From Macrostomum lignano (taxonomy: Eukaryota), in contig NIVC01000362.1 in the NCBI GenBank assembly GCA_002269645.1, forward strand, positions 496,001 through 560,000: a stretch of DNA of 64,000 bases. Reading direction: 5' to 3'. Every line of letters begins with the position of its first letter. The first letter of the stretch is position 1. A model generated the notes under the pieces. That model made no database searches. It saw only the letters and a program-made list of their open reading frames with translations, and was not told where the DNA came from. Positions 31,287 to 37,973 of the stretch are shown piece by piece. The translations under genes were made by a program, and so were the position numbers.

Positions 31287-34200
31287 TTATTCGCGCTTCT
31301 TCTCTGCTTTCTCTGCTTTCTTTTCTCTGCAGCGTTCCAAATATTGTTTGACTAAAGGATCCTCATTCGGTTTCCGCAAATAGTTGCCTTCTTTAACCCA
31401 ACGTTCTGCTTCTTCTGCTTGGCGTTTGTAAGTTTCTTTGGAGCGCTCGCTCCGAAAATTGGCCTCATCAATTCTTTCCTTTAGGTATTTGATAAACTTT
31501 AAATGTTTATCGACCGTTTCTTTTACTGCTTCTTTTCCCATGTTTTTTGGTTGAATTTTTGTTTGTTTTTCACTGACAAACTTTTTCATCTCTTCGTTTC
31601 CCCAATGGTTTTGTGATCCAATTGCTGTTAATTTTATTGCTTCACACAATTTGTTTTCTTTCATCGCATCTTTTTGCATTTCCCGTATTGCGTTTGACCC
31701 AAGGGATTGTCCTGTCGTAAGGAATTCTTTGTGATCAACTTCGCGCACTATCATTGACGTAAGTAAACCGCCTCGACCACTGCTGAACTTTTGTTTGTTA
31801 GCAAAAAATTTTGATACTTCACTTGGACTTTCACCTGCATTGGCGTCACGAACAGCAGCAAAAGCCGGCATGTGGTCTTGAACAGTCTTGGAAACAGGCT
31901 TTTTTACAGTCTTGGAAACAGGCTTTTTTACAGTCATTTTCCTTTGCCTTTTCATTTCATTTGAAGTCCCAATTTTGTAAAGCACTTCGCTAGCGTGACC
32001 AGGCTTTTTGGGATTCTTTTTTTGTTCCTTTTTACAGCGCCGTTGATATTGCTTTTTTTGTTTCTTTTTAAAGCGCTGTTGATATTGCTTTTTTTGTTTC
32101 TTTTTACAGCGCCGTTGAGATTGCTTTTTTTGTTTCTTTTTGTTTCTTTTCTCTTGTAAATTACCTCCTATTAGCCATAACTCCTTTTCCATATGATCTA
32201 ATGTTTTTTTTTTGGCTTTTTCTTGCACCTTAGCATTAAATCTTTCTGGATTTCTTTCAATTCTGTTTGCAGCTTCTTCCCGAAGTTGCATGTGATTCAC
32301 TTTGATACCCGAGTGGTGACTCAATGCATGAGCTGCAGCTGCGAACAGACAGTTGTTATGCGAAGACTCGATATCCACCGGCTTGCCATCGATTCTCGGA
32401 CGGTAATGTCCGAGTGCTGAATCCGTTGGCACTGAGTACTCAAGGTGGATAGCTGGGTTCGATGCGCCAGGCTTTTCGGGATAAAAAATTATTCCTTTTT
32501 TTTCGCTGATTGGGCGGCCGTGTTCGTCAACTTTATGTACTATGATGTTAATGTTTCGCGATTCTGCCAAAGCTTTCAGCTCGATCCATCCTCCCTCGGT
32601 TTTTTCAGAACGAACAGCTTCAGCATGCTGGGCAGCAGGGGTCCTCTCCTGCTCATGACCAGGCTTATGATGAGGACTTTCTTTCTTTTTGGCTTCAGCC
32701 TCGTGCTCATGCTCATGACCAGGCTTAGTTTTCGCTGGAGCTATGCGCTCCTTAATCGATCGAGTTTTTTTCATTAAATTTTTACGCAAATTCTCACTAA
32801 CATAGCTCTTCAGTGGTTGCGTGGCGTGATTGACAATCCTTTTTCTGACAGACGAGCACATTTCTTCGAATAGCTTATTGCTTAGTGATTCAATTAAATT
32901 TTTAATCAATTTTATTTTTACATGTAATTCGTGTCCAATTCTTACAGGTCTTTCGTTTTCTCCTTGGTCTTGGTGTGTCTCATGCGTCATACTCTTTTCG
33001 TCGCAGATTTTTTGCAGGCGAGCAGCCAATGTTTCGCAGAACTCTGCGGATAGTCTGCTCACGCCTACTGCGCAAGCCGTTGCGTCAAAAGCTTTCAATA
33101 GCCAGTTGAAAGCACTGAAGCCTTTCGCTAATTTCTTTTGTTGTCCAATTCTTTCATTGTCAGACAACCGGTGACTGAGCTGCTGAAGAAAGTCGAACCC
33201 ATGCTTCTCCCACCCAGGTTGGTGTAAAAAGTCAGCGACTATATCGCATCCAACTGTCTCCACACAGTTTTTGGTTTCTTCAGCTGCTCTAATAGGCTCC
33301 AGCTTTTCAGTGTTCTCGTAGTAATCAAGCAACGACATGATTGGACCATTTAGATCTGGCTCACGGAATTTCCGTGACAACTTCTTCTCAATCTCGGGCT
33401 TTGCGGCACTGGCAATTTTCTCCTGAAGTTCATCTAGGATTTTTTCAGATGCGAAGTTCACCCCAAAAGTGACTCCTTGAGAAACTATTTCTTTTCTTAT
33501 TGTTTTTCCAGCAGCTTTGCAGGATTCTTTCAAGCTTTTTCTGCAGACTTGCTCAGCAGGCTTCTGGGCAATGTCTTTGAAGCAGTTCTTCAGTGCTAAA
33601 GTTCCTTTTAGACCTTTGGCTGCACTAGTGACAAATTTTCCTATTCCTGCTGTGGCGAGCGACACCGCAATGCTGATTGCCTTTGATATGCCCCATTCTT
33701 CCCAGCTAAATTCGCCAGTGACCATGCCGCTGATTCCTTCGATGCAGTCACTTACACCCTCGCTAATTAGACCTGCGCCAACCTGGATCATGGTGCCAGC
33801 AGAGAGAGCAATTACAAGTGATCCGGCGACGACCTGCAGAATTCCCAGGCAGAACACTGCTAATGCCGACCAGCAGAATTCTGGCTTCTTTTCTATATCA
33901 AACAGCCAGAAGAGGCCCATCTCTGAGAGCTCTCTGAGTGCCTCTCCGTCGGTGCCTTCAGAGGATGCGATAGTCAGTAGGGATTTGGTGCTTACTTTGG
34001 CATTGGCACCAGCATCCATGATCCCTTGGAGACTTTTCATTCCCTTTTTGATGCTTTTCTCCCAGTTTTCGATCACGTTGACTCTGGCATTAATGAACCT
34101 AGAGAATGAATTATCTTCTCTCACTGACGATTCTTGTCCAGAATTTTCACCCTCTTCTTTAACAGGCAACGATTGACCTGACCGTGCTTGGCCAGAATTG

Positions 34201-37973: not shown

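Follow-up and report, generated by a model that had tools for sequence, protein, structure and literature searches.

What does a single uninterrupted reading frame of 2228 codons encode when it is found in an animal-type sequence, and what is its ancestry? The question is raised by a 64,000-nucleotide (64-kb) stretch of the Macrostomum lignano genome (assembly GCA_002269645.1, contig NIVC01000362.1, positions 496,001 to 560,000 of the forward strand; hereafter, the window). On its minus strand, the open reading frame (ORF) 31287..37973 is initiated by an ATG and runs as one frame to its stop codon. An earlier note on this DNA, made from the sequence alone, had proposed that the product is a giant intronless SecA-like protein that translocates itself and carries a swappable tip, in the manner of bacterial polymorphic toxins. 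According to the present analysis, the window protein is a typical full-length (long-form) member of a large animal family in which a SecA-type ATPase motor, a conserved hydrophobic module, a predicted circularly permuted OTU-like cysteine protease domain and a terminal domain follow one another in the same chain. This identity and architecture are assigned with high confidence. As a whole, the protein is probably a cytosol-facing, membrane-tethered ATPase combined with a ubiquitin-type protease, possibly active in host-microbe conflict.

The gene and the parts of its product on which this reading is based are as follows:

31287..37973, minus strand: complete single-exon coding sequence of 2228 aa, stop codon included, with both termini aligning end to end with full-length relatives
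34824..36416, minus strand: two-lobe SecA-type ATPase motor, aa 520-1050, with Pfam, NCBIfam and PDB matches
35649..35852, minus strand: insert with an acidic low-complexity stretch, aa 708-775, occupying the place of the first half of PPXD
33939..34811, minus strand: post-motor region, aa 1055-1345, with one TPR-like motif at about aa 1170-1215 (alignment A4)
33579..33926, minus strand: conserved hydrophobic module, aa 1350-1465, with KKPxFCW, a Gly-rich hydrophobic stretch, GLISEGVSDCI.G and W.ISKAISI
32088..32600, minus strand: circularly permuted OTU-like cysteine protease domain, aa 1792-1962, with the His half (GH1856-Y-R) before the Cys half (NNC1875LF) and the end at WLIGG
31374..31898, minus strand: terminal domain, termed tail A, aa 2026-2200, with QDH2034MP, G2068, DH2081KEFLTTG and R2097 (alignment A1)

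The motor was identified by profile and structure database searches. In Pfam, it was matched by SecA_DEAD (E = 1.7e-31), P-loop_SecA (5.2e-09) and Helicase_C (2.6e-06). The NCBIfam SecA models gave E-values of ~1e-52 to 1e-34 with scores far under their full-length cut-offs, and SecA chains in the PDB matched at ~6e-33. The SecA-DEAD ATPase core recognized by the earlier note was thereby confirmed. The sequence contains the Walker A motif GEGKS (aa 563-567), DEVD (668-671), SGT (875-877), AGRGADI (996-1002) and GRSARKG (1033-1039). These motifs are kept in 139-145 of the 145 family motors, among them the Walker A Lys in 139, the residues of DEVD in 142-144 and the Arg finger in 143.

The motor aligns to residues 78-220 and 283-541 of B. 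subtilis SecA, with nothing equivalent to residues 221-282. It thus retains NBD1, the second PPXD half (B. subtilis SecA ~283-364) and NBD2, and ~100 residues that include the acidic stretch stand in place of the first PPXD half. A complete PPXD (PF01043) gave no Pfam match in the window protein; this domain was recorded for several relatives, and in the bacterial locus L004, described below, it scored 23.4 bits against a cut-off of 23.5. The scaffold with the two-helix finger and the wing (PF07516) had no Pfam match either, in a search at the sequence level only. The C-terminal Zn/SecB-binding tail (PF02810), carried by all true SecA matches found, had no match in the window protein. The post-motor region was considered as a possible SecA scaffold; this assignment was rejected, as the A4 profile matches only consensus TPR proteins in the PDB. 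The protein is therefore placed in the SecA superfamily of ATPases, but several features that define SecA proper are incomplete or undetected in it.

The hydrophobic module follows the post-motor region. Averaged over 19 residues, the Kyte-Doolittle hydropathy rises above 2.0 around aa 1375-1387; no strong peak was seen other than that at aa 1373-1396, and a weaker one lies at 1441. The Gly/Ala-rich hydrophobic segment placed by the earlier note at 33640-33880 corresponds to aa 1365-1445 and lies exactly there. The module was found in 97 fetched proteins and is among the best conserved parts of the family, with a mean column identity of 45% in alignment A2. It is 38-48% identical to that of 15 relatives, with 20 invariant columns including a Pro, several Gly, and Glu, Asp, Ser and Lys. 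Of 92 sequences, 89 keep D1409, 87 keep G1393 and 80 keep K1431. Comparison with known families yielded only the bacterial DUF4225, below threshold in 7 of 16 members, and no relatives in the PDB, so that this assignment was dropped. A search of IMG/VR viral contigs found no relatives of the module. The next segment is also conserved:

32619..33506, minus strand: post-membrane region, aa 1490-1785, present in 39 fetched proteins, reading as Lys-rich and helical

No Pfam match above threshold was obtained for this region.

The OTU-like domain was recognized by its unusual order. In native order and taken alone, it was matched by Pfam OTU (PF02338) with 32.1 bits against a cut-off of 23.3, over profile positions 5-63 only; within the full-length protein the score was 22.1 bits, slightly under the cut-off. 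The segment upstream of the Cys half resembles the second half of an OTU domain ('WIELKALA...INIIVH...IHLEY...GHY'). When the two halves were rejoined in silico in canonical order, the score rose to 42.3 bits and the match extended over positions 5-119 of the 128 in the profile. Because the rejoined halves score higher and cover more of the profile, and because the canonical Cys-first order is reversed, the domain is, judging by its sequence, a circular permutant of the OTU family. It starts near 'GGWIELKAL' and ends with 'WLIGG', the break falling in the OTU 'WGG' loop. The His-then-Cys order is conserved in most relatives. Across 59 copies, the Gly is present in all 59, the His in 57 and the Cys in 51, with Ser at the Cys position in 6. 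The AlphaFold2 (AF2) model of the domain, built with 24 sequences, is confident, with a predicted local distance difference test (pLDDT) score of 85.4. Pfam analysis of the tails of five relatives showed no matches, OTU included; the domain was overlooked there because the permutation conceals it from Pfam. We know of no permuted OTU domain described previously, although no dedicated search was made.

The family to which the window protein belongs is large. A search with a clean-core query found 1241 proteins at E <= 1e-5 (at least 32 had been obtained in an earlier deep search), from teleosts, Polypterus, Erpetoichthys, Acipenser (sturgeons), Latimeria, Xenopus, Aquarana (bullfrog) and Mytilus. 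Most entries carry the names 'uncharacterized protein LOC...' or 'protein translocase subunit SecA-like'. Local profiles were constructed for each module, and the occurrence of the modules was tabulated for the 145 family proteins that had been fetched, a set with many partial gene models. The motor profile recovers 164 fetched proteins and the post-motor profile 160, the window protein among them. Teleosts, sturgeons and eels have members with the full chain, in which the motor is followed by the post-motor region, the hydrophobic module, the post-membrane region, the permuted OTU and tail A. Forms limited to the motor and the post-motor region are frequent too, many being partial gene models. 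Permuted OTU was detected in 38 of the 145 proteins and tail A in 23. Paralogues share contigs and have consecutive gene identifiers in Dallia and Polypterus, and many models are flagged 'LOW QUALITY'.

The clearest variation in the family is in the N-terminal head. Three types of head were found: a Zn-ribbon (in the window gene and 12 others), a beta-rich head with 'N.T.Y.W', and an ApoL domain in P0009 (E = 1.1e-22). The beta-rich head ('N.T.Y.W ... CP.Y'), found in many teleost members, occupies the first 100-125 aa of P0010, P0011, P0013, P0016, P0017 and P0018, and no Pfam match for it was found in the four that were scanned (P0010, P0011, P0017, P0018). In the window protein, the part upstream of the motor is composed of the following:

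37770..37973, minus strand: N-terminal head, aa 1-68, with an MG start and a four-Cys Zn-ribbon-like domain (CxxC...CxxC), 55% identical to P0001 and 54% to P0008
37500..37766, minus strand: Glu/Arg/Lys-rich 21-aa repeats, aa ~70-158, a 63-bp unit x4.2 at 37500-37764 with 92% matches
36534..37481, minus strand: pre-motor region, aa 165-480, reading as helical by eye

The MGNSQ N-terminus, the Cys pairs and the 21-aa repeats reported in the earlier note are all present. The CxxC pairs lie at aa 14-17 and aa 61-64, and both are kept in nearly all of 13 aligned heads; no Pfam match for the head of the window protein was found. Charged repeats of varying length likewise occur in many relatives. 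No relatives of the pre-motor region were detected by Pfam or by an iterated local search of the fetched family members. An MG start is present in 12 of the 13 aligned Zn-ribbon heads and in 25 of 59 long family N-termini, which suggests N-myristoylation in the family. Kyte-Doolittle analysis showed no strongly hydrophobic segment before aa 296 and no N-terminal hydrophobic signal, and neither a signal peptide nor a secretion domain was detected in the window protein.

The ancestry of the family was assessed by searching for the hydrophobic module in one genome per prokaryotic species. Matches were found at three loci (L004, L005 and L006), all in metagenome-assembled genomes (MAGs) of Amoebophilaceae, which are intracellular symbionts. 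The three ORFs are each cut at a contig end and have lengths of at least 2540, at least 2515 and at least 837 aa. Compared with the window protein, identity is ~33% in the motor, ~26% over 370 residues in the post-motor region plus module, and 31-38% in the module. According to Pfam, ankyrin repeats (L004) or a USP fragment (L005) are followed by SecA_DEAD with partial PPXD, P-loop_SecA and TPR. The same permuted OTU lies near the C-termini. In L006 it reads '...GTGHWQVVGG...NNCLPDALLAQL...LRK...SPEL...LMAGGN', and the family OTU profile is collinear with it (22.9 bits, profile positions 18-140). The USP/UCH-type deubiquitinase fragment of L005 is encoded by nt 433-687 (ORF aa 65-149) and, together with the permuted OTU, gives this protein two deubiquitinase folds.

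A neighbour-joining tree was constructed for the motor (469 columns, 100 bootstraps). In this tree the animal family is monophyletic (100) and forms with the Amoebophilaceae a joint group (100) apart from housekeeping SecA. The window protein lies inside the animal clade, where it groups with two ENA proteins (100) outside the sampled vertebrate and mussel clades; deeper branching within the animal family is poorly supported. Since the animal family is sister to Amoebophilaceae ORFs with the same chain from motor to OTU, an old gene transfer between a bacterium and an animal in its ancestry is supported by the sequences, in either direction. The earlier note had suspected a horizontal or retro origin, and a horizontal link to bacteria is supported at the level of the family: motor, post-motor region, hydrophobic module and permuted OTU recur as one chain in the three MAGs. 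Previously, large multi-domain effectors of Amoebophilus have been likened to polymorphic toxins, with SecA-like, OTU and ubiquitin-system domains among their variable parts (PMC3482391).

The route by which the earlier note had reached a horizontal or retro origin, namely the missing introns, was not upheld. Two teleost members have 8-10 exons each, with small exons flanking one giant central exon, which in P0019 encodes aa 253-1993. P0001, the nearest relative of the window protein, is likewise encoded by one unbroken ORF (L001 3366-13292, on a 21-kb ENA contig). Because teleost members keep the giant central exon, the lack of introns is regarded as a lineage feature of an old animal family and not as a sign of recent arrival. 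In the closest relatives, the intron-free P0001 (3308 aa) and P0008, two complete SecA-like motors were observed in tandem in one polypeptide.

The following mode of action would be consistent with these data. The hydrophobic module may form a helical hairpin that holds the protein in an intracellular membrane, perhaps with the help of N-terminal myristoylation, so that both the ATPase and the OTU/tail end would face the cytosol. The SecA-like motor would hydrolyse ATP to remodel or engage a substrate at the membrane; a polypeptide is the most likely substrate, since the motor is SecA-specific and half of PPXD is retained. The OTU domain might remove ubiquitin or a ubiquitin-like modifier, or process its own chain. 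Targeting or effector activity could come from the terminal domain and from the variable head, which in one relative is an ApoL pore-former domain. Host-microbe conflict is the most likely setting because of the relatives among symbiont effectors, the ApoL head, the neighbouring paralogues and the many defective gene models. This specific mechanism is put forward tentatively and could well be wrong in its steps.

Broader still is the idea that animals hold a new class of membrane-embedded machine, acquired from or donated to Amoebophilaceae. In it, a SecA-derived motor and a permuted OTU would extract or remodel ubiquitin-marked proteins at the membrane of an organelle or of a pathogen vacuole, interchangeable heads and two tails would act as effectors, and the whole would serve fishes, amphibians and molluscs as a new branch of cell-autonomous immunity, in mirror image of a bacterial effector. 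We consider this speculative and rather unlikely to be correct in full.

Several points weigh against the reading as a membrane-tethered ATPase and protease. Membrane insertion, topology and the substrates of the ATPase and of the protease are all inferred, and polypeptide threading as in SecA is unproven for a motor in which the scaffold and wing are undetected. Two residues of the window protein are atypical. R1858 (window 32400-32402), two residues past the OTU His, replaces an Asp/Glu that is present in 49 of 59 copies, Arg occurring in 2. A1000 (window 34975-34977), in motor motif V, is the sole Ala among 145 sequences, with Thr in 140. These replacements may weaken the predicted activities of the protein. 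The Met at position 6 of MGNSQM does not fit the usual myristoylation pattern, which we take to be that of the PROSITE rule. In Foldseek, OTU structures (OTUD5, OTUD1 and nairovirus OTU) were near the top of the matches to the AF2 model, mostly as half-domains and with non-significant E-values of 0.18-1.2; a permuted domain would be expected to give such a result with an aligner that depends on sequence order, and the OTU fold remains a prediction. Finally, the MAG contigs could be mis-binned host DNA: on the 69-kb contig (WTJV01000018.1), 240 nt were seen outside the ORF.

Among the alternatives, a membrane-tethered helicase/nuclease sensor deserves to be considered first. In such a sensor the motor would act on RNA or DNA, the Zn-ribbon and basic linkers would bind nucleic acid, and tail A would be a His-Me-finger (HNH-like) nuclease. 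SecA motors belong to the DEAD-like helicase superfamily, and weak Helicase_C and DEAD matches in Pfam were obtained here and in relatives. The four-Cys Zn-ribbon would suit this function, as would the linkers between the OTU domain and tail A:

31882..32141, minus strand: Lys-rich repeat linkers, a 36-bp unit x3.5 (32016-32141) and a 24-bp unit x2.2 (31882-31935)

In tail A, D2033-H2034, G2068, H2081, L-T-T-G and R2097 are near-invariant; the invariant D-H at the end of a strand is followed by a second strand and by a helix with an invariant His. The motif 'DH[IM]xP' presumably recalls classical HNH signatures. The AF2 model, of moderate confidence (pLDDT 73.6; predicted template modelling score, pTM, 0.77), has a topology that can be read as a beta-beta-alpha metal finger. 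However, the assignment to His-Me-finger nucleases carries little weight: no significant match was found by Foldseek against the PDB (best E 0.88), by Foldseek against BFVD or by a profile search of the PDB, so that tail A lacks a significant structural or sequence match to any nuclease. Moreover, the SecA_DEAD match (1.7e-31) far exceeds that of Helicase_C (2.6e-06), part of the substrate-binding PPXD is kept, and no nucleic-acid-binding Pfam domain was detected. A sensor of this kind is therefore judged unlikely.

The second alternative is the self-translocating, polymorphic-toxin-like effector of the earlier note, in which the motor would thread the C-terminus of its own chain through a pore formed by the hydrophobic hairpin and so deliver a swappable enzymatic tip. 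The order of motor, hydrophobic module, protease and terminal domain is real and conserved. For giant actinobacterial toxins that combine SecA-like ATPases with transporter domains, a part in their own secretion has been predicted (PMC8195603), and OTU domains can serve as processing peptidases in polymorphic toxins (PMC3482391). A conserved hydrophobic-Gly-Gly sequence (WLIGG) precedes the tail linker and is a potential ubiquitin-like cleavage site; it could equally be the OTU 'WGG' motif at the permutation breakpoint. There are also two unrelated types of tail. The 'type B' tail replaces tail A after the permuted OTU in P0004, P0005, P0007, P0009 and P0245, where it forms the last 280-410 aa and contains the motif VSFHL.PS.AGANAG..[YF].N.V..S..YN..E. 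No Pfam match for it was found in the three scanned (P0004, P0007, P0009), and homology of tails A and B was rejected by hhalign (probability 0.14%).

The distribution of tail A is hard to reconcile with a freely variable tip. An exhaustive HMMER search of 1.84 billion representative proteins found 140 representatives at E <= 1e-3. Since the mid-sized tail A proteins that were checked all still carry SecA or OTU fragments, tail A appears to be confined to the SecA-like family, in which it is widespread. When the C-terminal 419 aa, with their linkers masked, served as query in a deep word-indexed search, no matches were obtained at database-scale E-values. The swappable tip was for the most part not borne out: OTU and tail A recur across the family, one alternative unrelated tail type exists, and variation is clearest in the head. 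The earlier note had named invariant C-termini of paralogues without enzyme-fold matches as the finding that would speak against it; the C-termini are in fact largely constant, but one of their domains is an OTU. Its description of two C-terminal enzyme-like domains split by repeat linkers stands as regards both domains, the linkers and the match of the first to OTU; for tail A 'enzyme-like' is unproven, because neither the PDB nor the viral structure library gave a fold or sequence match and no enzyme family was matched.

Self-translocation itself fared no better. Only half of PPXD is present, the scaffold/two-helix finger, wing and C-terminal domain of SecA are undetectable, and the window protein showed no secretion signal, Rhs/filament repeats or cassette array. 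A module of 2-3 short segments is too small for a protein-conducting channel unless it is oligomeric. Such an effector is clearly improbable, and the membrane-tethered ATPase and protease is retained as the preferred reading.

A third possibility is that the window gene is a decaying or neofunctionalized copy, which has lost protease and/or motor activity and serves as a scaffold or decoy. Two replacements would agree with this, Arg for the acidic triad residue (2 of 59) and Ala for the Thr of motif V (1 of 145), as would the Ser for catalytic Cys in several relatives and the low quality flags of many. Nevertheless, a stop-free frame of 2228 codons is unexpected for a decaying gene (the chance of such a run is ~4e-62 at the local composition of 44.8% G+C), and the motor keeps its Walker A, DEVD and Arg finger, as the OTU domain does its Cys and His. 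In addition, some active OTU enzymes have other third residues. Decay is thus very improbable.

The window gene as a sequence foreign to its host, by symbiont contamination of the assembly or as cargo of a Maverick/Polinton-like element, is extremely improbable: it is intron-free, has bacterial relatives with the same core and lies 2 kb from a virus-like element whose genes share its strand, but it is situated outside the terminal inverted repeats of that element and on one contig with it, microsatellites and large repeats, nests in the animal clade and not with Amoebophilaceae (bootstrap 100), carries the tail A and Zn-ribbon head of the animal type, neither of which was seen in those parts of the bacterial ORFs that were available, bears eukaryotic-type signals at both ends, and contains a module absent from the IMG/VR viral contigs searched. 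The signals in question are a Kozak-like start codon context (G at -3, G at +4) and the following:

31220..31225, minus strand: AATAAA polyadenylation-type signal, 62 nt past the stop codon, read from sequence

The eukaryotic element, the microsatellites and the position in the tree argue against bacterial contamination in particular. Together with the two signals, they also bear out the earlier note in placing a giant intron-free SecA-like protein in an animal-type context.

The Maverick/Polinton-like element lies directly upstream of the SecA-like gene, at 40012-61121. It is bounded by 65-nt terminal inverted repeats (40012-40076 and 61057-61121, 94% match) and its ORFs include one for pPolB, a protein-primed family B polymerase, with an Endonuclease VII motif (49128-52106), and one for an rve integrase that carries a chromodomain (42617-43759). 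A target-site duplication is not evident, the flanks being AGATAC and AGGTGG. The SecA-like gene was rejected as its cargo, as the gene ends at 37973, ~2 kb outside the terminal inverted repeat. A 459-aa ORF within the element (53868-55247, minus strand) combines a deoxynucleoside kinase (E = 6.4e-24) with a TBP-like match (25.8 bits against a cut-off of 22.9), a combination that to our knowledge is unusual as cargo of a Maverick-like element.

On the other side of the gene, positions 143-29292 comprise ~2.4 tandem copies of a 9861/9862-bp unit with 100% identity. A 3.8-kb block of this unit occurs at 5768, 15629 and 25490, with an inverted copy at 143-3971, and the unit holds internal 21-, 22-, 26- and 252-bp tandem repeats. 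The array reflects either a segmental amplification of very recent date or an artefact of the assembly. At the far end of the window, a CT-rich 19-mer array (61270-62759, ~83 copies) and a (TAC)n microsatellite (63091-63742, ~217 copies) account for the long spurious ORFs on both strands at 61270-63742. The 64-kb window contains no second copy or fragment of the SecA-like gene elsewhere, and an Rfam scan of it gave zero matches.

SecA is customarily regarded as a housekeeping translocase of bacteria and plastids. Here its motor forms the core of more than 1000 giant animal proteins labelled 'SecA-like' or 'uncharacterized', for which 'protein translocase subunit SecA' is an unsuitable name. 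The sequences of the family are already known, in public databases under automatic names, and SecA-like domains in Amoebophilus effectors have been mentioned in passing. In the library searched, no study of the animal SecA-like family came up under the family name, the combination of domains or the gene identifiers. The features that appear to be new are the definition of the complete architecture, the permutation of the OTU, the conservation of the membrane module, the variety of heads (ApoL among them) and the collinear counterpart in symbionts. The family is a candidate for a new membrane-associated ubiquitin-system or defence machine that is experimentally approachable, and it is a clear example of genes passing between the effectors of symbionts and the genomes of animals.

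The window protein can be compared with several known systems. With polymorphic toxins (PMC3482391) it shares a very large multidomain chain and an internal papain-like (OTU) peptidase ahead of the C-terminal domain. It differs from them in that no secretion/trafficking domain or Rhs/filament repeats were detected in it and no alternative tip cassettes or immunity genes were seen, and the C-terminal domains of its family are largely constant. Bacterial SecA (PF07517/PF21090; PDB 1M6N, 3JV2) has the same two-lobe DEAD-like motor, with SecA-specific signatures and intact Walker A, DEVD, motif III and motif VI. Identity is ~25%, however, and the motor of the window protein is set in a 2228-aa eukaryotic protein with a membrane module and an OTU, with an acidic insert for the first PPXD half and with scaffold, wing and Zn/SecB tail undetected. 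In the OTU deubiquitinases (OTUD5/DUBA 3TMO, OTUD1 4BOP, yeast Otu1 3BY4), the counterparts of NNCLF, GHY and the intervening helices fit the same OTU profile, whereas in the window protein the domain is permuted, the beta-sheet/His half preceding the Cys helix, and has Arg as the third residue.

A polypeptide-handling ATPase is paired with an OTU deubiquitinase in Cdc48/p97 and Otu1/YOD1 at the ER (endoplasmic reticulum) membrane. The analogy is functional only, since an AAA+ hexamer is used there instead of SecA-type RecA-like lobes, and separate proteins instead of one chain. The closest non-animal relatives found are the giant effector-like proteins of Amoebophilaceae (L004, L005, L006), in which the motor, the post-motor region with TPR, the module and the His-then-Cys OTU are collinear with those of the window protein. 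Their heads are of the ankyrin or USP type, and Zn-ribbon, charged repeats and tail A were not detected in the available parts. The two groups also differ in the way in which they would reach the same compartment: the Amoebophilaceae proteins would need to be secreted into the cell of a host, whereas for the animal proteins the cytosol is the place of synthesis.

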